DNA of 64,000 bases. Source: Bispira polyomma. Its lineage: Eukaryota. The stretch spans positions 40,176,001-40,240,000 of the forward strand of contig OZ287755.1 in the NCBI GenBank assembly GCA_965649765.1. The letters are read 5' to 3'. Shown piece after piece: positions 4,506-34,400 of the stretch. The translations under genes were made by a program, and so were the position numbers. The notes beneath the pieces were generated by a model that saw only the letters and a program-made list of their open reading frames with translations, was not told the origin of the DNA and did no database searches. Numbering within the stretch: position 1 is the first letter of the stretch; the number at the start of each line of letters is the position of its first letter.

Positions 4506-6776
4506 ATACATGTATGTATTAATGTCTATCAACTGTTTATTGTGTACAGAAAGGCCTTTATCAGGTAGCCTTCTATAAGAACTTCCAGAAGGGTGTGCAC
4601 CTCTTTATTTGCTTTTCACTGTATGCAGATGTTTACTCCTATTTAATATATATATATAGCTGATTGTTGATTTAATCAGGGACTTTTTAATGACAGATCA
4701 CAGACTGGCGAATGGCCAGCTACAAACATTTGTTTACTGAGAAAGCTATTCGGGATATTTATTATCCAATTCAACGAGTTTTTTTTCAATGACAACTTTT
4801 ATCATATGTGTAGGTTAAGAGAGAGGTTCAGTTGTTGGTATTATCCTCTTTTTTTTAGAATTTTCAAATGCTCATAACATAAGAAGTAAAATGTGTTGTT
4901 TCATGGGTGGGATTCTTACCACTATTTCTTTTTAAAATCAAATTTGATGCGATATATAATTTCTGTATTTTACAAGATATTGAGAACTGTTAAAAATAAA
5001 TAATAAAATATATATATAAGTCACTTGTATGATGTAATCAAATTTTAAAGATCCTTTTTGCTTGGTTTAATATATACATTTTTGTCAGTTGAATAAACTG
5101 GCCATTTCAATCCACATCTTGTGTTTTCATCTTAGTTTATAAATATTCCTAAATTTAGGCTGATATAAAGTATGGTTATTTTCTTTTAACATATGGACAG
5201 TGTTTTAACATTTCAAATTCTGAGGTGACAATGTGGAGACTATCACCTTATTGTCTCACCTTTGCCGTCGCCACCCAAGAAGTAATGGACAAAAGTAACA
5301 GGACAGAAAGAAACCAGACAAAAAGTATTTGGACAAATACACCCATGGTACTCGAGTTGACTGATAAATGAAGAAATACTGCAAAAACTCACCATTTTTA
5401 GTATTATTCCAAAGAGGAGAGTCTTGTCCATAAAATGCACACCTTTTTAAAATTATATTTACAAACAAATAAACTGTCCAGTTAAACATCAGGAGATCCA
5501 AGAAGACCTTGACCTTAAAAACAATAATACACCAAATGTGAGAGGGCCTCGAGGAAGTGCATAAAAAGTAGGAATTATTTCATTATTTTTTTTTATTTGG
5601 TCCCCAGATTATATAATAAAATGATGGTAAATCAACACACATGCAAGGACCAACCTATATTTAAACAATACAATTAAATTTAAACAAATCATTTTAAAAC
5701 CTTTCTCCAGCATATGGTGTGTACAACCTATGGTATTTATCTGATGAAATAATTAACTACTCCCTTACAGGAAAGACAACATCTTTGTAAACAGAGCAGA
5801 AATCGTTATTATTGATAACTTTACCCTTAAAATAAATATTTATATTATAAATAAGTACTAAAATATTTACAGAAGAAGATATTTATTTTTTTTTTAAACA
5901 TTATTTCATACAAAATTTAATGATGAATACAACGTCACATTCACCAAGATGGATATGTACGTCCATGGATAAACACTTTTATTATTGTGCTGTATTATAT
6001 AATTAATGCTTAATGTTATGAAATATACATGTGAGGATATAAAATTCACCGTGTTTTACAGTTTCTAATGATTGTACGAATAAAAGGGATGTGATTTAAC
6101 TTTATTTGTGACATCAGTTGTATTATTGTTCAACTCAAACACCATTCATCTCAAGTACCATGGGTGTAGTCTCACTACTAGGACAAAAAGGTACAAAAAG
6201 TAAATTTATTGAATAAAAATCCATAAAACATATGAACATTAAACATATAAAATACATAAAAATGTTGAAAAATGTAACGCTTCAGTTCTTTTGGTAATCA
6301 CTAAGAATGTCTTAATGTGTGGCCTACAATCAAGCGGTAGGCATAAAAAAAAACAATCGGGTACAAAAATGCCATTAATGTTTTTTTTAAATTCTTTCGT
6401 GAAACAACCAAATAATTGTCATCTGTCACCATTTGTTGTACCGTTCTCTTATCCTTGTCTCAATGCTGTCTCATTGTGGTCCCTTGGCTGTCGCATTTGT
6501 GTCTCCTGGGTGTTGTCATACTGTCTCAACAAATGCCATTGGAAGGACCTTTTTTTTGCAGGTGACTGCACACAAATAATGGCGACGGCAATAAATTATC
6601 GCAACGCAGTCATGCATTTTTGTCACTTTTGTGGGATGTCAGCTTATTACCTACTAAGGCTATGCTGGCTCGAGCTTTATACAAGTGTCTGAAAGAATGT
6701 TTATACAGTTGAACCTTTATTATCCGAAGCTGTTGTGTGAGCTACATTATATTTGGCACTTTAGTTTAAACATCAT

Positions 6777-6995
6777 TTGGGAGGTCTCTATGGCCAAGTC
6801 ATTGGAGTGTCGGACTTGTGCGCCGAATGTGGCAGCACTGCTAGTTTGCTTTCTAAGCGAGCTGAGACTGAACAACTGGTTGACAAGTAAAAGAACCTAG
6901 GCTGCGGTAACAACATATCAAAGCAAATTTGATAACAGTGATGTTGAAAGTGCACTATATTAAATGAACAGTTATTAGTATTAATTATTATTATT
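6777..6995 (+). mobile_element. Degenerate SINE with L2-like tail
   Basis: tRNA-like head (TGGCCAAGT...), 3' end AAAGTGCACTATATTAAAT followed by (ATT)n. Confidence 0.45.
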
Positions 6996-8082
6996 TGGGA
7001 GAACTATAGTGTGTTTATAAAATATATTTGATAACAGAAGTTTGGATACTTTGTAAGTTCACTGTGTCTATATGATGGTGAGGTTTTTAGTATATGTGAT
7101 GGTGTTGAGGTAAATTACTGACCACATAAAGGACTTTGTTTGAGGAGTGTCCCTGCTGATATGTTGATCTTGGCTCTAAATTAGAACTAATGGAACCCAG
7201 CCAAACTTATGTGATTATTTTGTAAATTATAGTGGCCCCAAAATGTCAAAAGATGTACATAACATAAAATCAATTAACAAATTTAAAATGAATTTGAGTG
7301 TGAGATGCATTTTTAATCAGCCAAGGCAAAAATTGTTACCCCAGGCCTGAGTCGAGCCTTACATATTATTTCTAAGATGGCGGCACTTTTTTCTGAAAGA
7401 AACCAACACAATAGAAAACAAATAAAACATTTGTATGCAATAATGTTTTAATGCCACCTACATTATTATCATAAGTCATCATAGACACGCTGAAGAAGTA
7501 GAGTCCAGTGACAGGGCATGAAAACTCTCCAAACTGGTTGAGTAATGGTCACCATAGTTTGTCAGTACAGAGTTGAACACAATTGGGTCACCTTCAGGAC
7601 ACAAGTCACTACCCGGGTAGGCTGTAAAGGCCACATATTGTTTCTGCAAATATATGTGATTAAAGGTCTCTAGATGGAACAATTGTGTACAGTTTTGCAT
7701 CTGTGTACAGTCTCGTACTTGAGTATGTTAGTATCTAGGCCTTGATCAGAACATAATATGTCATATGCCTCAACTTAAATATATTTTGCAATATCATTTC
7801 TTAAAATCTATGCGAAAAATAGTGTTTTGTAGCATAGCATCAAATGAAGGTATCATAGTATAAATTTTTGTTGTCATTGATATTTTATTGCTTTGTATAT
7901 CAAAGAAAATGTATCCTATTTTCAGTAGAAATATCTCAATGCAAACCTGTTGATCAAATCTGGTAAGAAGCTGCTTATATTGGAATGAAAACTGAAACCA
8001 GTATCCATTTGCTGCAGATAATACAACTAAACAAGAGCATATATATGAAGTGTCTATTACTGCACAAAGTTTCTTATTTGTG

Positions 8083-12371: not shown

Positions 12372-13947
12372 GTAAAAATTCAGAATTAAACAAGATTAAA
12401 AAGATTAGTCATGAGCAAGATAACATCATAGTTATTAAAGATTTACTGTTCATGCGTGTTACCAGAAATACTAAATTAAAACAACAGTTTCCGTAATGTA
12501 TTTATACATACAATTATATCTGTGCTTACCTATAGTTTCTATTATTCCTGTTTTAATTTTTATTGTACTTAATTGTTTTGTAATCTGAGGTGGAATAAAT
12601 AAAAAAAAATATACAAAAATAAAAAGAGGGTGTAAATTAAACATGGAGGGGTTACATCAAAATCAAGTTTAAGTTAGCCCTGGAGATCATGCCATTCTTA
12701 AGTAGACGAAAAAGCTCCAACTTAGGTCTAAGGTACATGTCATTCAAATTCCTTGACTGCGGAAGAAAATACTTTGTCTGGCTATGACACTTCAGCAGCT
12801 TCTCTCTTCCAGAACCCTTTCCTCTACTTCCCCTTTGCTTACAGCCTGTGAGCCACCCAACTTTGCAGTAGTAGATACACATGTTGATTCTGCCATCGCA
12901 TTAGTTTGATCACACAAAAAGTATCCCCCCAAAATGTCTCAGTTTGTATACTTTTAAAAAACTTTTGCCATCAACAACAATGTATCTCTCTTCCAAATAT
13001 TAGGGCCCATGGACTTTGAGGATCTTTAGCTGTCTGGAGTTACCTCCACAAAACATCTCAGGCTGCTGCCACTGTTTCACTCGCTTATTTTTCTTTCCCA
13101 CCCCTAAGTTTTAGTTTTACCTTGGATATTTTAAAATCTCTAAAATTTTACCTTCTACAACTTGTAACCTTCACACATGGATCGAGATTTGACCCAGAAA
13201 TGATATTTTGACAACATACATCAGTTGAATATCTATACCATGTCTTGATTAATATTTCCCCCATACTGGGAAAAACTAATGCATGATAAGTTTGCTAGAA
13301 ATGAATGCAGCTTGTTTAAGGCCCATGCTGGTAAATTTTGGTCTGAAATTCTTGCCCGTATGGCACCTGTTTCAAACAATTTTGTATTAAGGAATTCCGG
13401 ACAATGACAAAGTTTATAGACAATAATTTTATACCTGTGAAAGGAGGCTGCAGTACTGACAGACAAGCAATTGCCAATTTCATTAAGTTTACCATATAGA
13501 CCATATTGCGGGGCACCACCCCAGTGGTGGTATGATCAGTTCTAGGGGACCAGTCTAACCTCACTCACGGTTCATTGCATAGTACTATAAAAGCCCCAGC
13601 ATTTCCAGTATTCTACCTTTTCAAATTCAGCTGCTGGACTGACAATATAAAACAGATACTAACAGAGGTCACCAGAAAAGGGAGGCAGAAACCACAAGGG
13701 ATTTGTTGTTTACATTTTTCTTTTATAACTTTAGTACACTGGTTTTTAACATTGATTGTCTCATTTATAATTATATTTATTGTAACGGATGTAGTTGGTG
13801 GAGCATTTGTCTGAACACTGGTTTTAACATTGACTGTCTCAGTGGAGCATTTGTCTGATCAATTCCTATAACCAAAGAGACGCTAGTCTATTAAATAGTT
13901 CATTGTTCTCAGTTTCACTGTGTTAACAAATTTATTGTACCCGTAAA

Positions 13948-14809
13948 ATGCCTAAAGTTAAAGTATATGGCTGTAGCAAGTGTTGCACAAAGCACACTTG
14001 TCCGGTTGGCAGTAGATCTCAGGTTGTAATACCTGAAGATTCGGGTACAGATAGTGAGACAGTTGAGGATAGTTCGATTGGTGTTGACAGCTTAGCCGTG
14101 GTCTCGAGACAAATATTGTTACAGCTCCAGTCAATGGGCAAAATGATGGAGCGACTGGATAAGCGAGTGTCAGTCACAGAAACAGCTCTGGCTCTAGTGA
14201 AAATTCAGCAAGCTTGAATAAGGAAAGCTATGAAAATAATGCCAAAACTGTTGTACCAAGCATTCAGTTCTTGAAACAAAATTCCTCTATTCAAAGTCAG
14301 GTCGAGGCATAATTAGCAGAGCTGAAACATCTCAATGAGAACCCTTGCTAAGGGTAAGCTCAAATCACAGAGAGGTGGGGGTCTGATGTGTCTGAAGCGT
14401 GTCGTTGAATGGCCCCAAAACCATGTGCTTTCGGGAAATTTTAAGGCTAGGCCGTGTTACGATGATTTGACCATGGGGCAGTGGTTTTGTGGATTTATGT
14501 GCATAATTCAGGATAAAAAATCCTCTGAAACGAAAGAGATTATGCTCGATTATATGGCAGGACTCATGGAGGACTCTCAGGATTTTTCTTGGGAGGCCGA
14601 TAAGGCCTGCCATGCATTTGTACTTACGACCATGGAAATGGACAAACTGAAATGGAGCGATGTTGACAAGCTCGATCATCTTAGGCAGGCCTATGCTCAG
14701 AAACATGTTTCTGACAGTAACGGGTAACATGTTTTTTTAAACATGTATGTAAGACTTGTAATGGGGCTCATAAGAGTAGTAGCTGTAGCAAAAAGCCAGC
14801 AAAAACTAA
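13948..14809 (+). pseudogene. DIRS #1 gag-like ORF, disrupted
   Basis: ORFs 13948-14217 and 14335-14727 align with gag of element #2. Confidence 0.8.
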
Positions 14810-15462
14810 GGGGCCACTGCAGAAATGCAGTGTTGATATTAAAGTAATCAGGTTGATATTAAAGTAATCAGTTCTATGGCACTGATTTTCGGGATTTCCA
14901 TCTGCTCAACAAACCCAGTAGTGCTAACTTATGTAAATAAAACAGTAGTGGTAACAACTATAGCTACAGTGGGGTACTGCGAGATAATCAAATCAAAATA
15001 AAACCAATGCACATTGAGGTGCAGTGTGTAGTCAAAATAAAAGCGGAAATAGTGCACAACCACTTGTCAAGGCTAACAGAGCCAAAGCCACAAGTAGCCT
15101 TCTCACTGTTCCCTACAAGCTGACCTTGCATGGTACTACCCAGCACAAACGCAATACTAGTGTTGGGGGGAAAAGAACTGTACAGAGCAAGGCTGGTGTC
15201 ACAATTGGGAAGGGTGCCAAGAAGTGTAAGTACACAGAGGCTAAAGTCATAGACAATTCTTAAGGGGTGGCTGTAAAGAATAGGTTTCAAATACTACAAG
15301 AAATAGACAAAATTGGAAATGACAAAGAACCAATTGTGGGTTCTGTTGTAGGCAATCTCATAGCTAAAGCTAGTCGGGCCCAAACAATAGGAACCATAAA
15401 GATGGTTAAGGCGCTCAGAAATTGGTCACACTAGTAGTGGTATTGCAATTGAAAGTGCAAGT

Positions 15463-17141
15463 ATGGATAAATATGCTTTGGAACTTAAGCAAAAAGTAAA
15501 TAAGAGGGATCTTTTGGACAAGGCTAAAACTTGTGATACACACTGTGCTTGGCGGGAACAACATAAGGTGGGCTACAGCTTCACCCTATTGATGGATTTA
15601 GGCTGTCGAGTAAGCGACAGTGGTTCCACTAATTATAGTCCCGACATCTTAAAAATGCACAAGTTACTGCGTAAAGATGGTAGGCAAAACTTTAGAGGTT
15701 TGCATATTCCGGTAAGTTAACAGCTGAACTCTGACAAATGGGCTCAATATCTAACAAAATACTGGGACTGGCAACTCCCGCTATTGATCAAATATGGGTT
15801 TTCTCTTGATGTAAGACATGGAAATATCGATCAATCAGATGAAACCAACCATAAGTCGGCCAACGACTTTCCACAGCATGTGGACACATATCTTGCTGAG
15901 GAATGTAAGTTTAGTGCAATATTAGGCCTGTTTCAAAATCCTCCAATTAATAACATACATTTCTCTCCTATGATGACTCGAGCCAAGTCTAGTTGTGGTG
16001 ACAGAAAGGGTCATTTAAGATCTCAGCTGGCCTATTGACCAGTCTGTAAATGCAGGGGTGTTTGCCACTGAATATCTCGGTACTGAGTTTTTATTGTCCT
16101 ATCCTATTTTATTGTCGCGCATTTAGGCATGTGCCTATTGACCCTAGAGATGTCGATTTACTTGGTCTGAAGTCCTGGGTCCTATTTTCTGGACAGATCA
16201 CTCCAGTTTGGATACCAGAATTTCAGACACGGTCAAATACATAATGGCTCAAGAGGGTTTCCATATGCACGCTTATATTGTTGATTATCTATGTGTGGCG
16301 CTCCCTAGTAACATTGAGAAAATATATAACAGACTACAGGGTCTGTTGGCAGAATTGGGCCTGACTGTGAGTGCCAAGACACTTATACCATCTAGTACTG
16401 AGGTGGTCTGCCTGGGTATTTTGATAAATACTGAAACAAATTAAGACATTGTGCGAACAATGAAAAGGAAAAAATGTCTTCACAAACAGGGAACTACAGT
16501 CACTGCTTGGTTCCCTATTGTATGTATCAAAATATATTATGTACTCTTTTGTGTACCTGTAGCACATGTTGCAACTTCTTAGAGACAACTATAGTAAGAA
16601 GAAATTTCGTTCACAACTGAGTTTAGAAGAGATTTAAAATGGTTTACCACTTTTATGCAGTAGTTTAATGGTGTCAGTTTCTTTGCTCACAAACCAATAA
16701 CAGGGCCCAGGTTGAGCTGGATGCTTGCCTTAAGGGTATGGGAGGCATATATGCCGACCAGGTTTATAAACTTAACATCCCTATTGAAATGACCAACGAT
16801 AACATATCCTCCTTGAAAATGCTGAATATTTTGGTGGCCCTCAGAATCTGGGCCCATGTTTGGCATGGCAAATGGGTGCTGTTTAAATGTTGTTACTTAC
16901 TAGTGGTCGCACATAGGATCCTGTTTTGGCTACTTATTCTAGGAACATCTACATGGTAGCAAGCCAACATGATATTGACATTAAAGAAATTTATATTTTA
17001 GGAGTAAAGAATAAAGTCGCAGATTTGCTCTCTAGATGGGACAAAACCATGAAAAATTTTAAACTGCCGCATGAATAGGTGGGACCTGTCACATGGATTC
17101 CTACCCATGTAGGCCTCCTAAGAGTTGATACCAGTATATAG
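15463..17141 (+). pseudogene. DIRS #1 reverse transcriptase / RNase H, disrupted
   Basis: NHKSA, FSPMMTRAK, AFRHVPID, VVCLGILIN, DAC and NKVADLLSRW motifs spread across frames. Confidence 0.85.
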
Positions 17142-17177
17142 TGTATGTATAGCATATGTTGTGGTTTGTGTATATAG

Positions 17178-17936
17178 GTGAAAACCCTGTAAGACCCCTG
17201 CTGACCAAGTGGGCCTGTGGCAGGTTGCATACTGCTTTTGCTGCCTCTACCTGCAACCGTATAACAGCATGTTTAGTCTCTTCCTGGCCTTCACTATATT
17301 CATGAATTGTGTCTCCTGCTCAGATTTCCAACCACTTGTCAGCCATTAAGGCTAAGTTTACCATGTTTCACATGTCAATTGAGGTCTTTTCAGACCCCCG
17401 AATAACCTTTAACAACAAAGCACTTCTAGCGAACCAGCCTTTTAAGGCTAAATTAAAAAGTCTATTTGATATTCCCATTTTATTAGATTAAGATCATAAG
17501 TGTGAGTGTACCTACATAGGACAGATTTTCAAGGCAGTTTATCTAACCAGCTTCTTTAGTTTCCTTTGTCTTTCTAACTTATATTGGTCACTGTCATTAA
17601 AACAGCTTTAGCCCTTGCCCCCCCCCCCCCGGCCCAAATGCCCCTCTGTTTCAGTACAAGCTTAACTCCACCTGGGTCCCTCTGACCGACTCACGTGTAC
17701 ATCACCATTGTAAAAATTTCCTTTAGTTATTAAACTGAGAAGATTCAAACTTGACATTTCACGCTTTCCGACGTTCAGGTGCCACCTTTGTTTTAAATAA
17801 TAACGCCCGTCTTCAGGACATTCAGCATCACGGCACCTGGACGTCGGACTGCGTTTGGTGCTATATTGCAGATTTGGCGGAGGTAGGTACTCAGGTGGCT
17901 GACTCCTTTCAGGCGGCCTTACAACCTAAACACTAG
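17178..17936 (+). pseudogene. DIRS #1 tyrosine recombinase, internally deleted
   Basis: N-terminal A..RL..AF..ST; catalytic HxxR (HAFR), W (GTW) and Y at the C-terminus. Confidence 0.85.
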
Positions 17937-18619
17937 TTTGGTGTTTGGTGGTTTAGGACACTCCGTGTCCCCTGTTTAGAATTTCAAATGTCTATAAAAC
18001 TAAATAGTCAGAAATTGTACCTAAATCTTGAGCTGACTTGGTGTATCTTGAAACTTAAGTATTTTAAAGAAGGAACTTCTAAAGAGAGACTATTCTATTA
18101 TTTTGTTGTTATATTGAGAAACACTATATTTTACAACTTATGATTATTGTACTGGTCATCTGTACATTAACTTCAACTTTATAAGGATGTTCAAAGCAAA
18201 TATTCTATTGATTGGTCTGGTCTAACTGAACTGTTTTCACCAATGAATCAATAATATTTAACTGTGTGTAAAAGCAATGATAATACACATATGTCACTGA
18301 AAAGCCTTCAGTTTGTGTAACTTTCTGAACATTCCTTATCAAAACTTTCGCAGGTTAATAATTAATATCAGCACTCACTACTTTAAAATTTTTAATTTGT
18401 ACATAGCTAACCCCTTGGGCGATTTGGCGGGAATAGCCAATGGCAATTAGAGTCATTCTGACCAGAATAGTTTTTTAAAAGTCCCTATCTAGCACTGACC
18501 CTACTAGCCCATTCGGGCTACCTTGCCAACATTTATCCAGGACCAATTAAAAATATTGCGATAGTGTTTGGTGGTGCAATGTTTGTTATTTGCTGACCTA
18601 AAAGCTTCTATCCTCAATA

Positions 18620-19950
18620 GCCATGACAATAAACTCAACAGCCGTGGTAGTAAGATCACTATTCATGGTAGTAGGATCAAATAGCCATGGTAGTAAGCTT
18701 AACAGCCGTGGTAGTAAGCTCACTATCCATGCTAGTAAGTTCAATAGCCATGGTAGTAAGTTGCATAACCATGGTTGTAAGATCAATAGCCATGGTAGTA
18801 AACTCAATAGCTGTTGTAGTAAGCTCAATTGATATGGTAGTAAGCTCAATAGCCATAGTAGTAAGCTCGATACCTGTGGTAGTAAGCTCAATAGCCGTGG
18901 TAGTAAGCTCAATAGCCATAGTAGTAATCTCACTACTGGTGTTTTTTTGCGAATACTACCAACACTACTGGGGTTTTCCCACCAATATTACCAAAATAAA
19001 GTTAATGTTTTATGGTCAAAGCCAAAATATTGAGTTTTAGACTGACAACCTTACTAAAAATATCACCCCACTAACACTGACAAAAAACATTACTACTGTG
19101 GTGCTGTTACTTTTCATAAAAAAGTACAAAATACGGTAAATTTACAAGATGTTTTGGGTAAGGTATAAAATATATCAGTGTGATGTAACTTTATCTTTAA
19201 ACCATTTACTTACTTTTGCCTCTGACTGAAATGGTAGATAAAACAAAGTAACCAGTTAGATATGCTGTCCTAATGCTTTCATCCTAAAATATGTATTCTA
19301 TGTTTGTAATCTTGTGATTTACTGCTCCCCAATTCTCTTGAATACTACGACCTATAAAGATATATATTGCTATGGACTAATGATAAATTATGTCTGAAAT
19401 TATTATTATTATTAATGATGGTAAACTAAATAACCATGATAATAAGCTCAATAGCCATGATTATAAGCTCAATAGCCGTGGTAGTAATTTCAATAGCTAT
19501 GATGGTAAGCTCACTAACCATGATAATAAGCTCAATAGCAATGATTATAACCTCAATTATGTATTGCAGTGAAAAACTACAATTTTTTCATGTTTAGTGT
19601 AAATCTTGTTTGAATAAATAAACAACAACAAATAACTTTATACAAGCAGCTGATAACAATGAGAGTTAGAAATTAATTCGATAATAGCATAATCGCCATT
19701 TAAATTATTTCTTATATCTATGTATTCCACTTAATATCCATTAAAATTATAATTAAAATCAATGATTTAAATCAATTGATTTAAATCAAACAACACTGTA
19801 CCTATGATGGTAAGCTCAATAACCATGATTATAAGCTCAATAGCAATGGCAGTAAGCTCAAAACCATGATTGTAACCTCAATAGCCATGGCTTTAGGCTG
19901 AATAGCCGTGGTAGTAAGCTGAATAATCATAGTTGTAAGCTAAATAGCCG
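18620..19950. repeat. 21-bp minisatellite (GTAGTAAGCTCAATAGCCATG), three interrupted blocks
   Basis: Blocks at ~18620-18925, 19415-19560 and 19803-19950; gives spurious periodic ORFs. Confidence 0.9.
19214..19282 (-). pseudogene. Orphan type A signal-peptide exon with in-frame stop
   Basis: MKALGQHI*LVTLFYLPFQSEAK|gtaagt; flanks homologous to ~25120-25535. Confidence 0.8.
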
Positions 19951-20135
19951 TATATGACATTGTTGTAAGCAAATAGCTGTATATGACATTGACTTTATGT
20001 ACACACATTTTAATAGTTATCATACAAAGGAACACAATATAGTAATGCATCATGTATTTCACCATTGATTGCAAATTTGAAATTACAATATCACATATCT
20101 GACGGTCAAATAATTTCATCCAAAAATTTTTTATT

Positions 20136-23100
20136 TTAAGTTGATAAACCTATCAAAAACCCATAAAATGTAGATTGGATGTCATTCATGTTTCCCGTTG
20201 CTTTAGCTACAGCGGTTCCAGTTAGGTGACTACTGCGCAGCCACACACGACTTCCGGCTGAGCACTCTATTATCAGAACATTGGTGCCTTGATCCCAGCC
20301 TTTTCCACTGGCTGTGGCTGTCGCGTATGCGTCATTGTTGATCATAATCTGAGGAACCACATGCTGTCAAGGCAATAATGCAAGAGAAAATATTATCATT
20401 ATTTGTTTATTTAACATACTCTATATAGAAAAAATGTTTACACATAAATATAATTCAGTTAATTTAGCAAATAAAAAAAGTAAATATATTACAAATTTAG
20501 TTTACAGAACTTTATAACATAAAGACAAAGGCAGTACATAAAGTATTATGATGTACACATATATTCCGGCATATACGTATTTTATCAAATGTTCTACCAC
20601 AATCTCTAGCATGTTTAGAAGTTTTTAACACCCTACATAGGACACTCAGTAGAGCCTAATCGCTCCACACTGGTCCCAGATTTTTTAGGTTATTACACAA
20701 TGTTTCTGTTAGTCTTTAAAAAATAATGAGGCTACAATACTAAATTTTTTACTGCAATATCATTCATCTATCACCTCCAAAATAAAGGTTTTACATAAAC
20801 TAAACCCCAGTATAGTTCCCCACCTCCCTAAAAGTGTCTTTGTCAACAGATCACACAACCAGCTATGACATTTTGCCCTGATTATTCTGATTGCTAAGGT
20901 TGCCCTCTAGTTATTATGGCTTTAAGACATCAAGGAGGTGGGGGGGGGGGGGGGGGGTCCCAAAAGTTCTTATTAAAACTGAAGTAAACTCAGACATACT
21001 CGCTAGTGTGACAACAGTCATATATGAAAGTTGGACTAAATGTTTGCTATGAACTATCCTAGTTTGTGCAACTTGGGGCAATCCTAGTTATTATTCTTGA
21101 AAACAACAAAAACAGAATATACAGCCCACTGAGGTCCAAGAGTGTGGATCACTGAAGTAAGTTTTACTATGATACATACATGCACATTATACACAGGTAC
21201 CCAAAAGAGATCAATATCAGAGTGACCATAAGGACAAAACTCTAAAGAAATGAAGAAAAATTTATGACTGGAAATGATTCAGCTTATTTCTAAAAGGTTA
21301 TAATCTACTGACAGTTCTAATGTAATGTAATGCAGAATATTTAACAGAGTACAGTCCCCATCACAGGAAAAATCACTGTCGTATTGAGCTTTGGACCTAT
21401 GAGTTTAGGACCAATGTGTTTAGGGTTCATGTGTTGTGATCTACAGATATTTATTGCTAGGATCAGCATGTCTACTATTTGACAAACAAGATGTACAAGA
21501 AATACTGTAATAAATCCCACATTTTGAGCTATGCTTGATTCCTTTTCTTGACAAATGAAAAGAACTGCCCTTACATTACATGATATATGTCCATGTATTT
21601 GATGTGTTACTTGAATGACATATAGACCCTATATCTTCACCTATTAAACTTGGAGTACCAACACAAAATACATTTTTTGTGAAAAAGGTATATCTTTATC
21701 TAAGCTATTTTTCTGCATAAACGCACATTGTTCTAGGTTCATAGAAAACAACTGGAAATACAGCTTTAATAATGTGTAAAATCTGGTGTATATCAGTTGT
21801 ATAACTAATCCTAATTTATTGTGTAAATTTAATGCAATAAATAGGTTAGAAAATGTGTGATAAACCAATATAAAGATTATTCACCATTGTGAAATGGCTA
21901 TATCATGTGTCATTTTATAACGTTTTATTGCAGCAAATACAATATGTTGGCTTTTAACTTTTCACTATTTTTATGAACAAAGAACTCTGGGATGATTTGG
22001 AATGCATTTTTAATCAGCCAAGGAAAAAAATGTTACCCCAGGGCTGTGTTTTGCCTTACATATCATTTCTAAGATGGTGGGCCTTTTTCAAAAAGAAAAC
22101 ATGTACAATATTGGTTGTTGTAAAAAAGCTTGACAAGGTGACTCTCACAGTATATTCGTAATTTAAACATAGTTTGGGTATAGAGCATAATATATTCACA
22201 TATTTGAAAAGAGTGATGTATAATATTGTATGGTCTAACAGTGAAATATGTCACACTCTGTTTTGATGTTCAATGTGACATATTTGTAATGGTAACCTGG
22301 TTGGAAGCAATTGATCCGAGTATATAGTGGCCATATCAACGTTTCACACTGTGCACCTGTGTCTTTTTTTTAAAAGGACAGCTCTTGTTTGATTAAGCGG
22401 AAAAAAATGTTTTCTTTTTATTGCCATGCTGGAGAGTCACAACTTCGACTGGGACACTGTAATCTGGTTAACATGCTGTTTTTTAACATGCCATGTGCCC
22501 ATGTGTCTGCCAATCAAAATGGAGGATTTGTATGCAATGATGTTTTAATGCCACCTACATTATTATCATAAGTCATCATAGACACGCCGAAGAAGTAGAG
22601 TCCAGTACAGGGCAGGTAAACTCCCCGGAACTGGTTGAGTAATGGTCACCATAGTTTGTCAGTACAGAGTTAAACACAATTGGGTCACCCTCAGGACACA
22701 ACAAGTCACTACCTGGGTAGGCGGTAAAGGCCACATATTGTTTCTGCACTGCAAATATATGTGATTAAAGGTCTCTAGATAGAGAAAATGTGTATAGTTT
22801 TGCATCTGTGTACAGTCTTGTACTTGAGTATGTTAGTATCTAGGCCTTGATCAGAACATAACAACAGACCACATCTACAATTGACAACAGACTATTTGCA
22901 TATAATATATATTTCCTGCAAACATTTAACAATAACACAAAACAACAACCACCTTTGCTGTTTCACATGTGAGTTTGATAAAGGAAAGCAGTGCATATAT
23001 ATTAAGTGTCCATTACTAAACAAAGTTTCCTATTCATGGTTTCCTGTGGTTGAGTGGTTAGGGAGTTGGTCTGGTGATCAAAAGGTCCCCAGTTCAACTC

Positions 23101-25452
23101 CTAGTGGGGATTTCGGTTGGTCTGATGATCATAAGGTGCTCGATTCGACAACTGCTATACTGCTAGGTTAAATGCTGGGCAAGATGTGAACATAATGACT
23201 GAGGCTATGTTATAGGCCACATGATTGGTTGATTGATTCAGTTGGTGAGCTTTAAAAGATGGCTCGCATCAATAAAGTGTGTTAAAATATAAACTACAAT
23301 ACAATATTCTACAATTGTCATCAGTCTTTTGGTTCTAAGAATGCTAATAAGTGTAATTTTTCATTTATACCTGAAACTCTATGCTCATATGCTGGTCCAT
23401 CCCAGGTGAGATTGTCAGCCTAAACATTTAAACTCTAACCAATGAGAATAAAACTGGTGCAAACTATTTTGTTTATAACCAATTATATTATCCAAATATG
23501 AAAATCATTTACATAATATTTAAAACAAATGTGATCACAAGTTATGGCTGGTTGCATTAAGCTGGAGGTTAAATTAAACCAAAGTGAGAACTTGATTTAC
23601 AGTGAAGCTTATTAAATATACATGTAAGTCTTTATAAAATATTACATAAAATCTACATTCACTTTGTAGTTAAATATGTATACAGTATATCACTGAAATA
23701 CTCATCACTGTCACTATGAAACATCATTAGTTCATACACATTTCATATTTTTCCCTGAAAAGTGAAGATTTTTTAAATGTTTATTCTATAGCACAGCCTT
23801 ATAACTGTAATACAGTACATATTGTAGTATTGATAAATAGCAACTAACCAAGAGCTTTTAAAGTTGTGATTTCTTGATGATACTTCTCATCCAGTTTAGT
23901 CAAGAGTTTTTCCAGGATTTCATACTTCTCATTTAGTTCGATCAACTGACTTTCTACTTCCTCTGTTGTCTAAGTAGGGATATAATACAGCAGAAGTTTT
24001 ATTATTCAAAGTTCTGTTATCCGAATATTTGATTCTATGAGCACAAATTTCCCCCAAAATTGCTTTATACATAGTATATACTCAGTACAGTATTTTGTAA
24101 GTGTGAATTTATTTGGGTTTGTACATCCATTTCAACAGCTCAGGGCACATGACGATGGCCAGATTTAATTGTGAAAGAAACTAGTGCTGAATGACTGTAA
24201 ATAACCAAACCAACCCGGCAAGTACTTTACAAACTTTCCCACACGAAGGAACAAGAAGTATTCAAACCCTCATTGGTGAGAGGCCAGGGATTGTGAAGCA
24301 GGCACTTCTAACAACAAGGCCATGGGAACCGACCCTGGGCATTGGGACTCAAAATGCCACTTGGCCTGATTTTGTGCCACTGATAGGCACCACTAACTGG
24401 CATGTCCATAACTGAAGAAAGAGTAGCATAAGGATAACTGCTACTTTGCCTGTTTTTGTGACTGCCATCGACCGGCACCACTAATTGGCATGCCCATAAC
24501 TAAAGAAAGAGTAGCATAACGATAACCATTTCATTCTTCGTCCCCAAGGTTTTTCATGGGGACAGGATCCAATGACAGAGATCTGCCATGTGGAAGGGTC
24601 ATCTGTGGCACTATTTATCTGCTTATATCTTAGAGCCCCATGTTGTGTTCAAACCGAGGATCTCTGTAGCCCACAGTGGGTGTGTTTCCATCTAGTGACA
24701 TGACCATCTTAGAGCCGCATGTTGTGTTCAAACCGAGGGTCTCTGTAGCCCACAGTGGGTATGTTTCCATCTAGTGACATGACTTTTTTATTTTTTACAA
24801 AGCTTGTACTTGTGACATTTTAGCACAAACATTTATTGACATATTCACTTGCACACGTTGCCTGGTCATGAATTCTTAATATTCACATATTTGTATTAAT
24901 TTTCTAAATATTATATTACTTTAGGTTGTTACAATAGCTACCCATGCTAATGCTTAATTAATCTTATGATATTTTTTTAACAAATTTTGGAAATTTGTGT
25001 AAATTTTGAAGGCGCAGGGGCAATATTTTGAGTTTTAACAAATGAGATTTGTTCAAATTCTGGTTTCTCTTCCAAAATGTTTAAGTTGAGTATTATTTGG
25101 CACTTATTATAGTTTTTCACCAACACTAATGGGTTTTCTTCCCGCCAACACTACCAATATTTAAGTCAATGTACTGTGGTCAAAACCAAAATATTGAGTT
25201 TCAAACTGACAACAGTACTAAAAATATAACCCCACTAACACTGACAATAATAAAACATTATTACTCTGGTACTAATACTTTTTCGTAAAAAAGTACACGA
25301 TGCAGTCTATTTTTCAAGACCTTTTGTGTAAGGTATAAAAAAAATCAGAGTGATGTAGCTTTATCTTTAAACCATTTACTTACTTTTGCCTCTGTCGCAA
25401 ATGGTAGAAAAAACAAAGTAACCAGTAAAATGTGCTGTTGTAATGCTTTCAT
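20136..25452 (-). pseudogene. C1qDC type A copy A2; exons 25452-25384, 23969-23849, 22748-22559, 20363-20136; one 1-nt deletion in exon 3
   Basis: MKALQQHILLVTLFFLPFATEAK / coiled coil / VQKQYVAFTAY...FTCPV(fs)GLYFF / HVVPQ...FYGFLIGLST*. All introns GT-AG, phases 0,1,0. Exon 3 is 190 nt versus 191 in intact copies. Confidence 0.85.
24104..24330 (-). mobile_element. tRNA-derived SINE family 2 (equivalent copy at ~59540-59765)
   Basis: Reverse complement resembles 26091-26348 (CTTCACAATC.CTGG.CTCTCAC, GTGGGAAAG, GGA.GT..AA..CCAAAT). Confidence 0.7.
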
Positions 25453-26090
25453 CCTGAAATATTGTATTCTATGATTGTGATCTTGTGATTGACTGCTCTC
25501 CAATTCTCGTGAATACTACGACCTGTAAAGATATGTGCAGTACAAAGAAATTAATGTTACCTATGTGATAAGACATATTGTTGCTGTGTAGAGGAGTAAC
25601 ATTAACTATCGATAAAGCCAGTAGCATTGAATTTTATATGTACAGCAGTGTAAGTGTATAAATTATGATATGTACAAAGGAATGAATGTTATCTATGTGA
25701 AAAGACATGTGGTGGTTGCTGTGTTAGGTGTAACATTTCCATTGATAAAGCAAACAGCGCTGAATTTTAGTTGTACATCAGTGATGGTAAAATATATCAT
25801 ACCTTTTGACAAGATGTCAGTTTGATATTTATCACAAGGGTGATATATGTGACAGGAAACAATTTTTTTTAAAACTATAATATCACTCTCTATTATCCGA
25901 TGTGCATACAGTGTACACTTTAATGTGGTATCCTTAACAAAGAAACATTTTCCTTTAAGAAAACAAACTGAGATCAATTGCATAAGTTTAGAAAATTGAT
26001 GAATAATATCACCTGTAAAACATTATGCAAGTATCTGTATAACATAAATAATTTTATCAGTCAAATAATACATTTAAATGGCACAATGTT

Positions 26091-26348
26091 TGGGGCCGCG
26101 GTGGCCTAGTGGTTAGCATGCATTGCGCTTCACAATCACTGGTCTCTCACTTCTGGGCAGCGTGAGTTCAAATCCCGTCGATGCCTATGTGGGAAAGGTG
26201 GTACTTCCTTACTGTGGGCCGCTGGTTTCAGTGCAGAACCTTGACCGACTGTATGCAGTGTTTCCTCCAGCGTTTCCAACTACCTGTCCCAATATAACCT
26301 ACTAAAAGGTACTAGAGTGGACGTTAAATATCCAAATTCAAATTCAAG
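26091..26348 (+). mobile_element. tRNA-derived SINE family 2, full length
   Basis: A box TGGCCTAGTGG, B box GAGTTCAAATCCC, GTTTCCTCC motif, (TCAAAT)n tail, ATGTT on both flanks; absent at the equivalent site near 10230. Confidence 0.85.
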
Positions 26349-27096
26349 TATGTTGGAGAAGGCCATCGCTCTGTCTAACCATGATCTTAACCACACAGAA
26401 TTCTATTTGTTATTGCTTCTGGAAGGCTACTTCATTTAGGTGGCCCAACTTCAATTTCATTAGTTCACATCATTGGTGTTTTTGAAGGGACAACATTCCG
26501 GAGCTAACTAATTGTTCAAGTATTAACATTGAAGACAAAAATGTATTGTCATTTAAACAAAATTATCGTGTGAGCTGATACAGACATGCTTTTTTATTTA
26601 AGGAGTTTTTATAGATATCTTATATACTTTTGAATGTTTACTTGTTGCTTATTAATCTGCAGAAGTTTTAAGAAGATGTCATTGAATTTTTCTCATCAAC
26701 TTACACTTGGTTTGCTCACTTTGAGGGCTGTATCTATTTCTAGTGATCCTGCTGTCATCTATGTCAAACAAACAAATGAGCTAAATAGTTTAAGTGTTGT
26801 ATTATGTTTTTAGTACAAACATTGAATTTTCTATTGTACTTTTCAACAATGTTAAGCATTCATAATACTTTTTTGATAATGTTAAAGTTGGTACTTCCAT
26901 ATTGGTGTATGTTTGGTGGGGGACATACTTTCGGTATTTCGGTATTTAATTTAATATCATGACTCTGTGACCTACGGTTATGAATAATAAATAGCAGAGA
27001 AAAAAATGGCCATATTATTACTTTTATTGGCTTTCTTACATTTTTCTTTCCATGTAAATATGATCAAATGACCAGATTTACAGCCCAATGCAGCTG

Positions 27097-27330
27097 TTAT
27101 GCTGAAGTAGATAAAGCTATTAAAAATCCATAGAAGGAACTCTGAACATCAGTCATATCCTCAGCAGCATGAGCCACCAAATACCCGGAATTCAAACTAC
27201 TGAGCAGCCACACTTCACTTCCTTCTGTACACTCAGTTATAAAAGTATTAGTACCATGGTTCAAACCATTTGAACCTGCTGTTGCTGATGTATATCCATC
27301 ATTATTAATCATAATTTGTGGGGCAACATA
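27097..27330 (-). CDS. B2 exon 4 (C1q C-half)
   Basis: ttttag acceptor; ends FYGFLIALSTSA-TAA. Confidence 0.92.
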   Translation of the reverse strand, partial: YVAPQIMINNDGYTSATAGSNGLNHGTNTFITECTEGSEVWLLSSLNSGYLVAHAAEDMTDVQSSFYGFLIALSTSA

Positions 27331-28440
27331 CTAAAATAAATTAATTAACATAAGAGTAAATATATGTACCTGAAATATGCATAGTGAACAATATAGCCAA
27401 TGACCTTAATGACACAAACGTAATAACATTAAACCCTTTGCATCAGCAACTAAATCACCAGTTCAAGAATTTGTGATCATAAAAATAATAAGAATATGAT
27501 TCAAGAATACTATCTTCTGTAAAAAAACTGCCCTTGGGCGTTGTATATTTCTAAAAAAGGGGTTATAATTAAAAAAAAATTCTGTGGCTTTGTAACATGT
27601 TGTTGGAAAGTCATAGTAATATGTATACAACATTTGAACTATCCACAAATATCTGGTCTCTGAACCAAGGGTGAATAAAATTTACATGTTGACCTACATT
27701 ATCATACAATTATCTAAAACAATCTAATAATAAAAACTGCCTGAAGGACAGATGTAGCTATTATCCATATTATTTTAATGTAGTAACTTCTAAAATATTG
27801 GCATTTGGTTATCTAAAAATTTCTTAAAAAAGGGAGAGAGGCTATAGCTAGAGAGGGGGCTTTAATTACATAAATATAGTTTAGTGTAGTTTTAAGATTT
27901 TAAACATTTTACCCACATTATTAGGTAAAGTCATCAAAGACACTCCGAAGAAGTAGAGTCCAGTTACAGGGCAAGTAAACATTCCAGAACTGGTGTCGTA
28001 ATGTCCGCCATAGTTTGCAAACACTGAATTAAACACGATTTTCTGTCCCTCTGGACATTCCATATCTGCTCTGGGATAGGCTGTGAATCCCACATATTGC
28101 TTTTGTACTGCAAATATATCACCTAACATCAAACATTTATCTATTTAATGCATAGAACCAAGACTTACATTCTAACATAACCGAAAACTTCTCAATTTTA
28201 AGTGTAAATTTTTTTGTGTAGTCATATTAAACATGAGATAAGACACTTCTAGTCATCCTAGTCATGCTTTGTTACATAAAATATTGCACCGTGCTTTAGC
28301 CTAAGTGCAATGCATTATTTTATAATATTGCACTCTTACATTGTAGATTATTGTGACATGAAAACAGTTTTAAATCAATGTATAACAACACCAAGTACAA
28401 ATCTTATTTGAGTATTTTTTTTACTGTAAATTAAAGGTGA

Positions 28441-28480
<40 letters not shown>

Positions 28481-31400
28481 CACAAAAGAAACCCTGGAAC
28501 AATAGTCATTCAGTATCTCAAAATATTTAACTATGAGTAAATCTAACAGTAGAAATCAACAGTTACATATATATGTTACAGGCAACCTGTGTAATCAGGA
28601 ATTTTGCAAAATCCCTGGAAATTTCAGTCATTTCGCAAAATCCCTGATTCACTTAGGCAATTCCCAAACTGCCACAAAGTATCAACTTTTTTCTCATTAC
28701 TTGTCAGACATACAGAATTCATACACTTTTAAGTTGATTGTACATCATAGGCTAATATAATTGGTAAACACTTTGTAGTGACTCAAGGTCATGTGTATGT
28801 ACCACAAATGCAATGAAGCACTAATCTTTTTAAGCATTTGCTCTAAGTTGATCGTACATCATGGGCTTTATAGCATGAAGAAAATATAATGGATAAACAC
28901 TTTGAAGTGACTTTTGGGATAAATACTGACCACAGATGAAATCAATCACTTATTTTTTTAAGCAGTGGCCTCCTGTAAGTTCATCCCTGAGTAAGTATTT
29001 GTTTTTATTATCAAAACATCTTGGTACCTTTTAATGTTTGCCAAGACAAGAATTTTAAACCAGCAGCCACCTAAAGAGTGATTAAAGTCTGAGTAAGAAA
29101 TGATGCGAGATCCTTGGTAGGAAGTGTATTACATTGATAATTGCAATCAGATTCATTTCCTGGTAGGAGGGTTTATAAAATCTAAACAGATTGGTAATCC
29201 TTCACTTTTTACTTTTCATATATATTAAACTGCTGTATTTACTTGTGGAAATGGCTAATTTCTCTCGTGGTGTCTAGGCTACACGGGTGTCAGTCCTGCC
29301 CCACCCTTAAAATTTGACTTAAGTTACCAGGCTAAATTGTACAGGTAAACTGCTTATGACATCACACGAGTTTCCCCTTGTTGTCAGAGGTTCAAATGTT
29401 TACACTCATTTTTCATTGGCTTAGAGCTTGGGCTAACCCAAAGGGTCTTATTAATCAGTCAGTTTAAAATTTGAAACTGAAAGGCACAGACGTGCTAGAA
29501 CTTTTATGTGGAAACTGAATATTTTTATGAACTGTCTTCTCGTTTTTAGTTTGTTTTTAGTTGTTGTTTTTATATTAAAGTGATCTGCAACGAACGAACA
29601 CTAACTGGAAGGAGTTTGGATGAAATTATCAGTGAATTGTGCTAGATACGGCTGATCTGACAACCTCATGCTTGCTTGGCTCGAAAGGGCAACAAAATTA
29701 TAAATACTGGCTTCTCTATTTCTGTATAACAAATTTTTGGTGTCAAGCGTGTGATTGTCAAACCAGGCCCAGAGGTATGTGCTATCTTTTCAGAGTTTCA
29801 GTATTAACTGTGACTATTAAAAATGCCAAAGTGTAGTAAAACGCTGTGCAAAAAGTGTGTGACCAGACATTTCCCACCCACGGGTAAAAAATGTCAATTG
29901 GAATTAGAATTGGACGTGACTTCACAGGTGGACGAAGTACTAATGCAGAAGAAGGATTCTCACCAGAGGCTGAAGTGGCTGAAGAAGACGAGGGAGACAT
30001 GCAGAGGCAGATCCTGAAGGAGCTTCGAAAGGTCAACTCCAGGCTGGATGTGGTGGAGGAACGGGTGGCGGAAACACAGAAGGGACGACAGAGAGTACGG
30101 GATAATTCAAAGTTAAGTAGTGATTCAAATAAACGTTACAGTAAGAGTATAAAACGCAGTTCAAGAAACAAACATATGGAAAGTGACAGTGATACGTTTT
30201 CTCATAAACAGTGCAGTAAACATAAGAGAACAGTCAGTAGAACAGTTTCAAGTGATAGTGATACATCTTCTGATGATTCAGTAGTACCTACTATGTCAGT
30301 ATTGAAATCCTCCCAGGATATACAGAGGGAAGTAGACAGCAGGTTGAGAGAACTAGAATGTGAAGGGGCGTGTAATTCAGGTAAACATTTGACCTCCAAA
30401 ATTAAGTCGAAAAGGGGGGGGGGGGGGGGGTAATGTAGATATCATTGTCAAGAATAGAGTGGCTTGGCCACATGAGTGTATCCTGGGGGGTACCAGTAGA
30501 CAAAGAGTGGTATATGATCAGTTGTCGCTCACACAGTGGGTACAGGGCTTTTGTAAAAATATTATAGAAGAGCGTGATAGCTCAACCAAGGATAAAATGG
30601 TGCAGTATATATCAGAATTGATGGAAGATGCTACAGACTTTTCGTGGCAGGGGGCGAAGGCGGCTCATGCGTTTGTCTTATGCGAAATGGAGAGAGGTAC
30701 TGTAACATGGCAGAACACATCTCGTATTGACAGAATACACAGGGCCCATGTGCAAAAACATATCCCAGGTTTGGGCAAATCCAGTTAGGGTAAAAATACT
30801 GAAAATACCAGAAAACCTTGGTATTGTAAAAATTATCAAAATGGTAGCTGCTCTCACAGCAAAGATCACAAAATGGGGGACAAATGCAAAAACACATTTG
30901 TTCTACTTGTTTGGAAAGGGGAAGAGAATTGAATCACCCAGAAAAAGATTGTAACTTTGCCAAAAAGAAAACCTTTTCAAAAAACGAGCTAGCTGCTCAA
31001 CTTTAGAGCAAGGTGAGGGCAGCAAAATATCAGCTCATGATAATAAATGTTCTACAAAAGTAAATATTAAAACAGAAGCTGGTTGCAGCAAGGCTGCAGT
31101 ATCTGTCAATGTTGGTAAAGGTAAAGTTTCAGTGGAAAAGGTGTCTGAAAAAGTGGTAAATATATTCAGGACCAGACTTGTTTATAACAGTCGTGTCAAT
31201 GTGAGAGAAACCCAAGCTATGTTAGCACATAAAGGTAAACAAAGTCGACAAATGTGACAGAACGACCAAGTACACAAAACAAAGTACTGACAAAGACTTT
31301 CTTCCCAACAAAAGACTCGACCCAAAGTAAGCACGACAATAGACATTGTGTAACAAAGGGTGACGTCAACAATAAAAATGCTAAAGGGGGCTCACACAAA

Positions 31401-34400
31401 GGGGTAACTCTAGTTCTCCCAGAGCAATAGACACTAAAGTTAGTGGTGAGGTGTCACTTCACAATGGTGACATTGAAGTTACAAACACAGGCAGACTAAT
31501 TGAACAGAATGACGTGAGCGATAGTGACAGGCAATTAGCTGACACAGGTGAAACAATCAATGGTGACACGGGAATGAAGCAGTTGGTATATGATGTAAAC
31601 AAATACAACTCTGATGATAAGTTCATCAATTCAATCCTTGGTAGAACAAAGAATCGGGACTTGGACAATAAGGCATTGACCAAGGTGTTCACTTTCATGA
31701 CTTGGCAAAAACAATCAGAATTTGACTTTGGGTTTATCCCTCTATCGGACAGAATAGAAAAAGGGGGGTGCTCGGGTGAATGCCCTAATAAGGTGGTCAA
31801 TCCTTTCCAGCAACATGCAGTGATAAAAAGTACTGGGGATTACAACTTTAAGGTCGCCCGTATACCAATTGCTTCACAACTAAACGTTAACAACTGGAAA
31901 AAATACTTGCAAAACTATTGGGATCAGCAGTTAGTAGAACTGATTGAGTTTGGATTTCCCCTTGACTTTAATAGGCGATGTCCTCTGAGATGGGAAGGGG
32001 AGAACCATAAGTCGGCTACAGATTACCCAAAAGACATAGAAGTATACTTGAAAGAAAAAGGTACATTTGGGGCAATCTTGGGTCCATTTAATAAACATCC
32101 CATTGAAGGTGGTCACTTCTCCCCCTTTATGAGTAGGGAAAAGCCAAATTCAGATAACAGAAGTCATTATTGACTTAAGTTGGCCTCCTGAGGCGTCGGT
32201 GAATGCAGGAGTGGATAAGAACCAATACTTGGGTGTTGATTTCAATTTAACATTTCCAACGGTCGATCACATAACTGCTGAACTCAATAAACTCGGTAGA
32301 GGTGCATTGATTTATAAAATAGACGTGAGTCGTGCGTTTAGACACGTGAAAATAGACCCCCATGACTATGACTTGCTAGGTCTCCAGTGGAAAGGCACTT
32401 ATGTAGACACGTGTCTCCCATTTGGGAGTAGACACGGGAGTCAAATTTTTCAGAGACTAAGTGACGCGGTGCGTTACATTATGTGTAACCATGGTTACAG
32501 CGTAATAAACTACATTGACGATTTTATCGGATATGGTACGCCCTCTGTAGTTCAAAAATTGTATGACTGTCTAACCAAAACCTTAGAGGACCTAGGTTTG
32601 ACCATCAGTGCATAAAAGCTCATCACCCCTGCGACGCAAGTGGTATGTTTGCGTGTCCTTATTGACACCACAAAAGGTACAATTGCTATACCCCAAGAGA
32701 AATTGCTAACAATACAAGACACAGTCAAAAAATGGCTAACAAAAACCATGTGCACAAAGCGTCAACTGCAGTCTGTACTTGGATTTCTGCTGTATGTTCA
32801 CAAGTGTGTAAAACCAGCTAGGATATTTCTTAATAGAATGCTAGAACTCCTCAGGTGCTCATATAGCAAAAGTACTATAAAAATAACCAATGACTTTCAC
32901 AGAGACTTAAAGTGGTTCAGTAAGTTTCTCCCAGAATATAATGGGATTTCCATGTATGACTATAGGGCTGTGGACTATGTGTTAGAGCTGGACGCGTGTT
33001 TGACTGGACTTGGAGGTGTTTGGAAGAACTGGGTATATCATTTAGAGGTTCCTAGAGGTTACATGAATTTGACCATTGTGCACCTAGAAATGGTGAATGT
33101 GTTGCTGGCTGCTAGGTTGTTCCAGAAAGCATGGGCTGGCAGAAAGGGTGATAACCAGGCAGTGGTGTGGGCTTTACAACTGGGCAAAGCAAAAGATCCC
33201 TTTTTGGCAGCTTGTGCCAGGAATATTTGGTACACGGCTGCAGTAGCAGACATTGAATTCCAATTTGTCCATATACTGGGAAAATGAAATAGAACCGCTG
33301 ATTTGCTGTCAAGATGGCAGAATACCATTGAAAATAATCAGGAACTCTGTAATCTTGTTAATAGCCCTGTTTGGTTGAACACATCAGTGGAAATGTTAGA
33401 GCTAGATAGCGAATTGTGATCACATAATAATGATATGATGCTATACTTTGTTACAGGACACAGGCTCCTGGGGAAGCTGGGGTCACAGGCCAATTCTAGA
33501 CTTACAGAGGCTTTCAGGCCCAAGACGCAGACGACATACAGACAACAGTTTAGGACATTTGTGGCATTTTGTGTGTATGTTAAAGTTCAATTGCATCAAG
33601 TGTCTGTGACATGTGTCATGTCCTTTCTAGAATTTCTAATGTTTAATAATGTTTCTAGTCACATGATGGCCAACTATATCTCTGCAATCAAAGCGAATTT
33701 TAACACTTAAAAGATGGTTTTAGTTAAGGTCACCTTAGGGTGTACGTAAAGTAAATTAAGGTCACCAGATGTTGGTGACCAGTGTTCAGCATAAAAGTAA
33801 ATGTAACTGAATGTTTTGTGTACTCTGTATAATCGTGTTTTATCTGTGAATATATTGTAGTAGTAGTTCATGTACATATTAATAAATCAGTATCCGCATA
33901 TGAATCTTTTCACTTTGACTTGGTGGGGTAGGGACTGATGATAATGGCCTTAAATACAGAAATGAATTATTCCAAAGGGTTGCAAAGTGTGAAAAGTATC
34001 TGCTTGTACATTTCAGATCCAGATCCAGACATCTTTACATACTCAACAAATATGAGGTTCTTCAGTGTGGAGACATTTAGAAACTGATTAAGAAACGTTC
34101 ATCCCCAGAGGATCCTCTCATATACTATGTCTGCATTGAAGAGACATATGAAATATTGTTCATTTTTCAATCACTGTTTGTAATTACTACAAATTTTGGC
34201 AATTTGCGTATGCCTAAGCCTAAAAACCAGTCATTTTGCGAAATCCATGGAAATTTTAGTCATTTCTCGAATTGCCTAAATGAATCAGGGATTTCGCGAA
34301 ATGACTGAAATTTCCAGGGATTTTGCAAAATCCCTGATTACACAGTTTGCTTGTAACATATACATTTCACAATAATTATCGTAATCATTGACTTTGCAAA

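Follow-up and report, generated by a model that had tools for sequence, protein, structure and literature searches.

Two decayed retrotransposons lie on the forward strand of our window, the whole stretch of 64,000 nucleotides of Bispira polyomma DNA analysed here, and their tyrosine recombinase (YR) is probably expressed by splicing: comparison with related elements indicates that a donor within gag is joined to an acceptor behind the RNase H stop, giving a fusion of the N-terminal part of Gag with the recombinase. In the proposed scheme, a single gag ATG would serve as the start for all three proteins. Gag would be translated from the unspliced RNA, as would Gag-Pol after a -1 ribosomal frameshift at A AAA AAC. 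The fusion, composed of 133-211 Gag residues (369 in one lineage) and a recombinase of about 320 aa, would be encoded by a subgenomic mRNA in which a phase-1 gag donor is spliced to a phase-1 acceptor just past the RNase H stop. The features concerned are as follows, a slash marking the exon border.

13507..18015, + strand: element 1, decayed Ngaro-type YR retrotransposon of the form A-ORFs-B, disrupted by frameshifts, stops and internal deletions
13948..14353, + strand: predicted exon 1 of element 1, from the gag ATG to the donor
14354..14355, + strand: predicted splice donor GT of element 1, phase 1, AAGG/gtaagc after 14353
14354..17177, + strand: predicted intron of element 1, 2824 nt, with gag core, pol (RT/RNase H) and spacer
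17176..17177, + strand: predicted splice acceptor AG of element 1, phase 1, gtgtatatag/GT before 17178
17178..17935 (end approximate), + strand: predicted exon 2 of element 1, tyrosine recombinase with stops, frameshifts and two deletions
29258..33937, + strand: element 2, decayed Ngaro-type YR retrotransposon of the form A-ORFs-B, most of the YR deleted
29823..30380, + strand: predicted exon 1 of element 2, from the gag ATG to the donor, frame broken in the window copy
30381..30382, + strand: predicted splice donor GT of element 2, phase 1, TCAG/gtaaac after 30380
30381..33456, + strand: predicted intron of element 2, 3076 nt, with gag core, Cys/His knuckle, pol (RT/RNase H) and spacer
30979..31023, + strand: predicted -1 frameshift signal of element 2 at the gag 3' end, A AAA AAC, short spacer and hairpin
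33455..33456, + strand: predicted splice acceptor AG of element 2, phase 1, tttgttacag/GA before 33457
33457..33703, + strand: predicted exon 2 of element 2, recombinase N-terminal SAM-like domain only (PF13102/PF02899, E about 2e-4)

All four splice sites of the original prediction were confirmed on the sequence with their positions and letters, each in phase 1 of the local gag or YR frame, and the introns, expected at about 3 kb, measure 2824 and 3076 nt. The RNase H stop lies at 17139-17141 in element 1 and at 33417-33419 in element 2, followed by spacers of 36 and 37 nt. A spacer of 36-38 nt is thus correct for the window, but does not hold as a general rule, since relatives have 5-103 nt. 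Similarly, both donors precede a KSxRGG-like motif by a short distance, though not by an equivalent one (3 codons in element 1 versus 8 in element 2). The in-frame spacer ATGs of element 2 at 33435 and 33438 are present as described, and element 1 also has an in-frame spacer ATG, at 17156.

Elements 1 and 2 have no alignable DNA in common. The ends of element 1, about 13507-18015, are the limits common to its family matches, and its closest relatives are about 80-87% identical. Its exon 1 comprises an N-terminal Cys/His motif, a coiled coil and a second helix. Its deletions, which affect gag and YR, appear as breaks against the family copies, and the match to the catalytic domain PF00589 is weak (17739-17900, E=0.007). 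The closest copies of element 2 show 91-92% identity. A Pfam match to RVT_1 (32160-32612, E=8e-10) marks its pol, the integrase SAM-like match begins just 3' of its acceptor, and compared with copies L001 and L002 the catalytic part of its recombinase is deleted beyond 33703. As originally noted, both copies are decayed, with exon 1 out of frame in both and with stops and shifts in pol. As dead copies, they can make none of the three proteins. An apparent element 1 spacer of 99 nt was rejected as an artefact of decay, the true value being 36 nt. A degenerate 21-nt tandem repeat array lies 3' of element 1 at about 18610-18935 of the window, and related copies occur elsewhere in the window region.

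Both elements are of the Ngaro type, an assignment made on structure. The ORFs follow each other on one strand as gag-like, RT/RNase H and tyrosine recombinase, the order of Ngaro elements, and Pol ends about 40 aa past the RNase H motif ADLLSRW. No methyltransferase was found after RNase H, and Pfam matches on the long Pol ORFs of relatives are confined to RT and RNase H. Full split direct repeats, A1-ORFs-B1A2B2, are present in the family-2 copies L001 and L007 and in the outside elements L021, L026, L027, L028, and L030, and a downstream A copy is found at some family-1 loci; both window copies have lost A2-B2. Self-comparisons of family-2 copies and outside elements revealed no terminal inverted repeats. 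Lack of a methyltransferase, split direct repeats and lack of inverted repeats match the Ngaro features listed in PMC13465315 and PMC8547959, namely no methyltransferase and A1-ORFs-B1A2B2 split direct repeats, and the elements were therefore filed as Ngaro-type. A DIRS1-like identity was ruled out, as inverted terminal repeats with an internal complementary region were not found, and a pol without methyltransferase domain speaks against both DIRS1-like and PAT-like elements. The label DIRS-like of the original prediction is to be corrected to Ngaro-type.

Among the 20 family-2 copies, only L001 and L007 retain the full split repeats. The form A-ORFs-B without A2-B2 is seen in L003-L005, L008, L010-L016, L018, L020, and both window copies. 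The loss of A2-B2 may result from B1-B2 recombination or from a template jump during reverse transcription, and copies lacking A2-B2 should be replication dead ends. One outside locus, the Tara scaffold L031, apparently contains the same element in tandem or nested form, positions 1-1670 being identical to 5416-7085.

The genome (1.04 Gb, 75 contigs) allowed conservation of the sites to be followed copy by copy. Twenty family-2 copies were analyzed, which belong to subfamilies that are 71-97% identical. The acceptor AG is present in 20/20 copies, the window element included. Position -3 is always C or T, and position -4 varies among A, T, and G. Read in the YR frame, the variable -4 is codon position 1, the fixed A is a synonymous third position and the next G is fixed as well. 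A free first and a fixed third position are the reverse of the pattern that protein constraint would produce. The donor, CAG/GTAAAC, has its GT in 17 of the 18 copies (window counted) and GC in one. In L011, L016, and L020 exon 1 is open and ends in phase 1. For family 1, the donor GT is found in 8/8 matches and the acceptor TATAG in 5/5, counts that derive from two short pattern searches in which the test positions were left free. The conservation of GT/AG and phase asked for by the original prediction is hence found in both families, and it extends to distant lineages as described below.

Some details of these copies deserve mention. GC replaces GT at the donors L026:2372 and L003:2659, which points either to decay of the single copy or to tolerance of a GC-AG intron. 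The L011 subfamily has a spacer of 39 nt; a reading of 29 nt is an artefact of decay in that copy. An identical 20-nt start of exon 2 occurs at 19 genome places, which represent a further family-2-related subfamily outside the 20 copies. Family 2 also shows a candidate 5' leader intron (29345-29793 in the window, likewise in L011 and L016), with a CAG/GTAAAC donor about 480-510 nt and a TTTCAG acceptor about 30 nt 5' of the gag ATG; its signals are not clearly present in outside lineages.

YR searches yielded 120 close homologues, which are 42-54% identical, and 5750 clusters with E values no higher than 1e-10. We analyzed eleven outside loci, one from ERZ26052378, one Tara scaffold, three metagenome contigs and six from ENA ERZ22147071, so that 6/11 outside lineages share a single ENA sample. 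Their YRs are 34-52% identical and show the same phase-1 donor/acceptor pair. A T-rich YAG acceptor in phase 1 precedes the first conserved YR helix in all 11 lineages, mostly 17-19 codons before an AFRP-like recombinase motif. Each of the nine lineages in which gag is available has a phase-1 donor past the second helix of gag, 3-12 codons ahead of the KSxRGG-like motif. The stretch from ATG to donor is open and of length 3n+1 in each of the 11 elements tested. Typical features of U2 introns are found, i.e., GT(GC)-AG ends, donor context, a pyrimidine-rich tract and YAG.

With a crude scorer blind to the reading frame, the best acceptor was in phase 1 in 12/13 lineages and the best donor in 11/11, with nominal p values of about 2e-5 for acceptors and about 6e-6 for donors; the scorer was home-made and designed after some sites were known, so that these values serve as a rough indication. 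Ten lineages use GGT for the Gly at the donor and one uses GGC, the background being 63 GGT among 211 Gly codons. As part of the sites had been selected for their GT, the knuckle control is the cleaner evidence: the Gly of the conserved G-K/R in the gag knuckle is freely GGA, GGT, or GGC. The acceptor can also be traced at the protein level. A pair [ILVSTPA][GDE] stands at exactly -19/-18 after a hydrophobic stretch in 83% of the 46 close YR homologues of sufficient length, a position-specific count that alone was used because the control window included an internal conserved site (max 0.72). Such a pair behind a hydrophobic run is what an NYAG/R acceptor with its pyrimidine tract gives when read in frame.

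No conserved ATG-initiated YR was seen. Within family 2, an in-frame ATG before the acceptor is absent in 8/19 copies, which make up two whole subfamilies (the L003 and L016 groups), and present in the spacer of 11/19; some subfamilies retain in-frame ATGs 6-7 codons before the acceptor. Most outside lineages have no upstream in-frame ATG, and across 16 elements such an ATG is absent in 10. Five elements have their first ATG only after 33-80 codons of the conserved YR region, so that initiation at an ATG of its own would remove the SAM-like domain. Among homologues, the called YR start codons are spread from 1 to 73 residues before the AFRP-like motif. The spacer from the RNase H stop to the AG varies from 5 to 103 nt, and the YR is in frame 0, 1, or 2 relative to pol. 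Frequent lack of an ATG and a variable frame together argue that the YR needs an upstream coding exon ending in phase 1.

Translation of the YR from its own start, at a spacer ATG or a non-AUG codon after reinitiation or from an internal promoter, is accordingly a reading to which we give little credence, although such an ATG occurs in both window copies and an ML(Y/C)FV-G-like start recurs among the homologue ORF calls. The splice-like motifs would then reflect constraint on protein or RNA structure, yet conservation acts at the nucleotide level, with the third-position A fixed and the first position free, the ATG is missing from two clearly replicated subfamilies and most outside lineages, and the conserved phase-matched donor in gag would be left unexplained. 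Still less probable, and indeed very improbable, is a Pol-YR polyprotein formed when ribosomes read through the RNase H stop or shift frame there. The YR does follow this stop in frame in element 2 and in the L003 and L016 groups, and according to PMC3783388 a fungal Ngaro YR may be in frame with RT-RH or shifted. However, the variability of spacer and relative frame excludes readthrough or frameshifting as a general mechanism, some lineages carry tandem or further in-frame stops, and a shared recoding signal like that of the gag-pol junction was not seen at the RNase H stop.

In 6/10 elements another GT within gag scores higher than the predicted donor, and the identity of the donor is the weakest link of the model. 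The acceptor could be real and be served by another donor upstream, located in the 5' leader, earlier in gag or at a phase-1 GT of the C-terminal knuckle, with a YR carrying a short leader or a nearly full-length Gag-YR as product. Candidates exist: a strong leader donor CAG/GTAAAC in family 2, strong phase-1 GTs at the knuckle in L022, L026, and L029, and, in L011 and L029, strong phase-1 GTs close to the N-terminal motif. We nevertheless consider this unlikely, if less so than the two preceding readings. In most lineages, the family of the window among them, the knuckle Gly reads GGA or GGC, so that a GT at the knuckle is not a conserved feature and is missing from the window's family, and a non-coding leader without ATG would cost the YR its conserved N-terminal helices wherever the first ATG lies so far inside. 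The donor behind the second gag helix is the only one found in all lineages examined.

Splicing from this post-helix donor also agrees with the predicted architecture of Gag. An AlphaFold model of the L021 Gag (mean pLDDT 66) has an N-terminal Cys/His motif and helices at 97-131 (long) and 171-197, followed by a confident helical core and the C-terminal knuckle. The donor, at residue 198/199, falls into the linker between helix 171-197 and the folded core and is thus, according to the model, at a domain boundary. Fold searches with the Gag model returned generic coiled-coil/helical matches only, with Z under 5, and for this reason no capsid fold is claimed. Through the shared coiled coil the recombinase might co-assemble with Gag in a ribonucleoprotein or particle and so be brought to the cDNA, a tentative suggestion to which we assign slightly less than an even chance. 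Equally plausible roles of the Gag part are nuclear targeting and the choice of target sites; PMC8547959 ties Ngaro ORF1 to site choice.

Gag-Pol is likely made by a -1 frameshift at A AAA AAC and the hairpin behind it, as judged from the sequence. Family 2, L021, L026, L028, and L029 share this heptamer in the reading frame of gag, in each case with a hairpin behind it, and the -1 frame is open into pol wherever the copy is intact. Among the loci that could be scored, L023 and L031 did not reveal this signal.

Traces of the spliced product itself were sought in several ways. No spliced retrocopy was present among 42 exon-1 and 46 exon-2 pattern matches in the genome, which is unsurprising, since most such copies may be rare or unviable, and gives no support. 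Three homologue searches and a representative search returned no Gag-YR fusion protein; the matches that were traced had been predicted as ORFs on genomic contigs, where a splice would not be apparent. A few long N-terminal extensions of the YR represent read-through of the intron rather than fusions. A search of viral contigs found nothing. Three runs over L011 behave like genomic DNA, and no donor-acceptor joint occurs among the joints listed for them.

Expression of a 3' ORF from a spliced subgenomic RNA is familiar from retroviral env and foamy-virus pol, and retroviral Gag-Pol arises by a -1 frameshift at A AAA AAC with a stem-loop. The spliced 3' ORFs of retroviruses are not known to carry more than a few Gag codons, whereas here about 130-210 Gag residues would stay on the equivalent of the integrase. 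The closest precedent in the literature searched is the subgenomic splicing of copia-type elements (PMC5580714). Drosophila copia, barley BARE1 and Arabidopsis EVD, all Ty1/copia, are likewise retroelements that splice their own coding RNA (PMC5580714, which also mentions frameshifting), and the copia intron covers all of pol, as does the intron predicted here. The copia-type product, however, is Gag alone, in contrast to an enzyme placed on a truncated Gag.

Ngaro elements of Cafeteria (PMC8547959) and Xenopus (DIRS-53_XT, PMC9210276) resemble ours in a gag-like ORF1, an RT/RNase H ORF2 and a YR ORF3, in the lack of a methyltransferase and in the arrangement A1-ORFs-B1A2B2. They are presented there with three separate or overlapping ORFs and no mention of splicing, whereas our elements apparently have the YR as the second exon of a Gag fusion. 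A further difference is that no SGNH hydrolase ORF was seen in ours. Dictyostelium DIRS-1 (PMC7192593) likewise combines gag, RT/RNase H and YR in one retrotransposon, but DIRS1 is bounded by inverted terminal repeats and contains an internal complementary region and a methyltransferase, and in our elements neither inverted repeats nor a methyltransferase were found; splicing in PMC7192593 concerns a reporter intron only. Full-text searches and a targeted reading of PMC7192593, PMC4157794, PMC6681497, PMC9210276, PMC2685390, PMC3266345, PMC3783388, and PMC8547959 revealed no mention of spliced expression of the YR. We are thus dealing with a real and well-conserved feature of a known element class, and the expression strategy to which it points is apparently undescribed in the literature covered.

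The DIRS/Ngaro literature searched is silent on how the 3' recombinase ORF is expressed and how the enzyme is delivered to the cDNA, and a conserved splice offers a concrete answer. There is about an even chance that this extends to a broad clade of animal Ngaro elements, in which the integrase would be a spliced Gag(N)-recombinase, delivered by its coiled coil, within a scheme of three proteins from one ATG. If true, stand-alone YR ORFs called on DNA would be N-terminally incomplete. A conserved splice would correct the ORF annotation of a widespread element class and change which recombinase protein merits biochemistry. Likewise, the splicing decision of the host would act as a switch between production of genome, Gag and RT on the one hand and of the integrase on the other.
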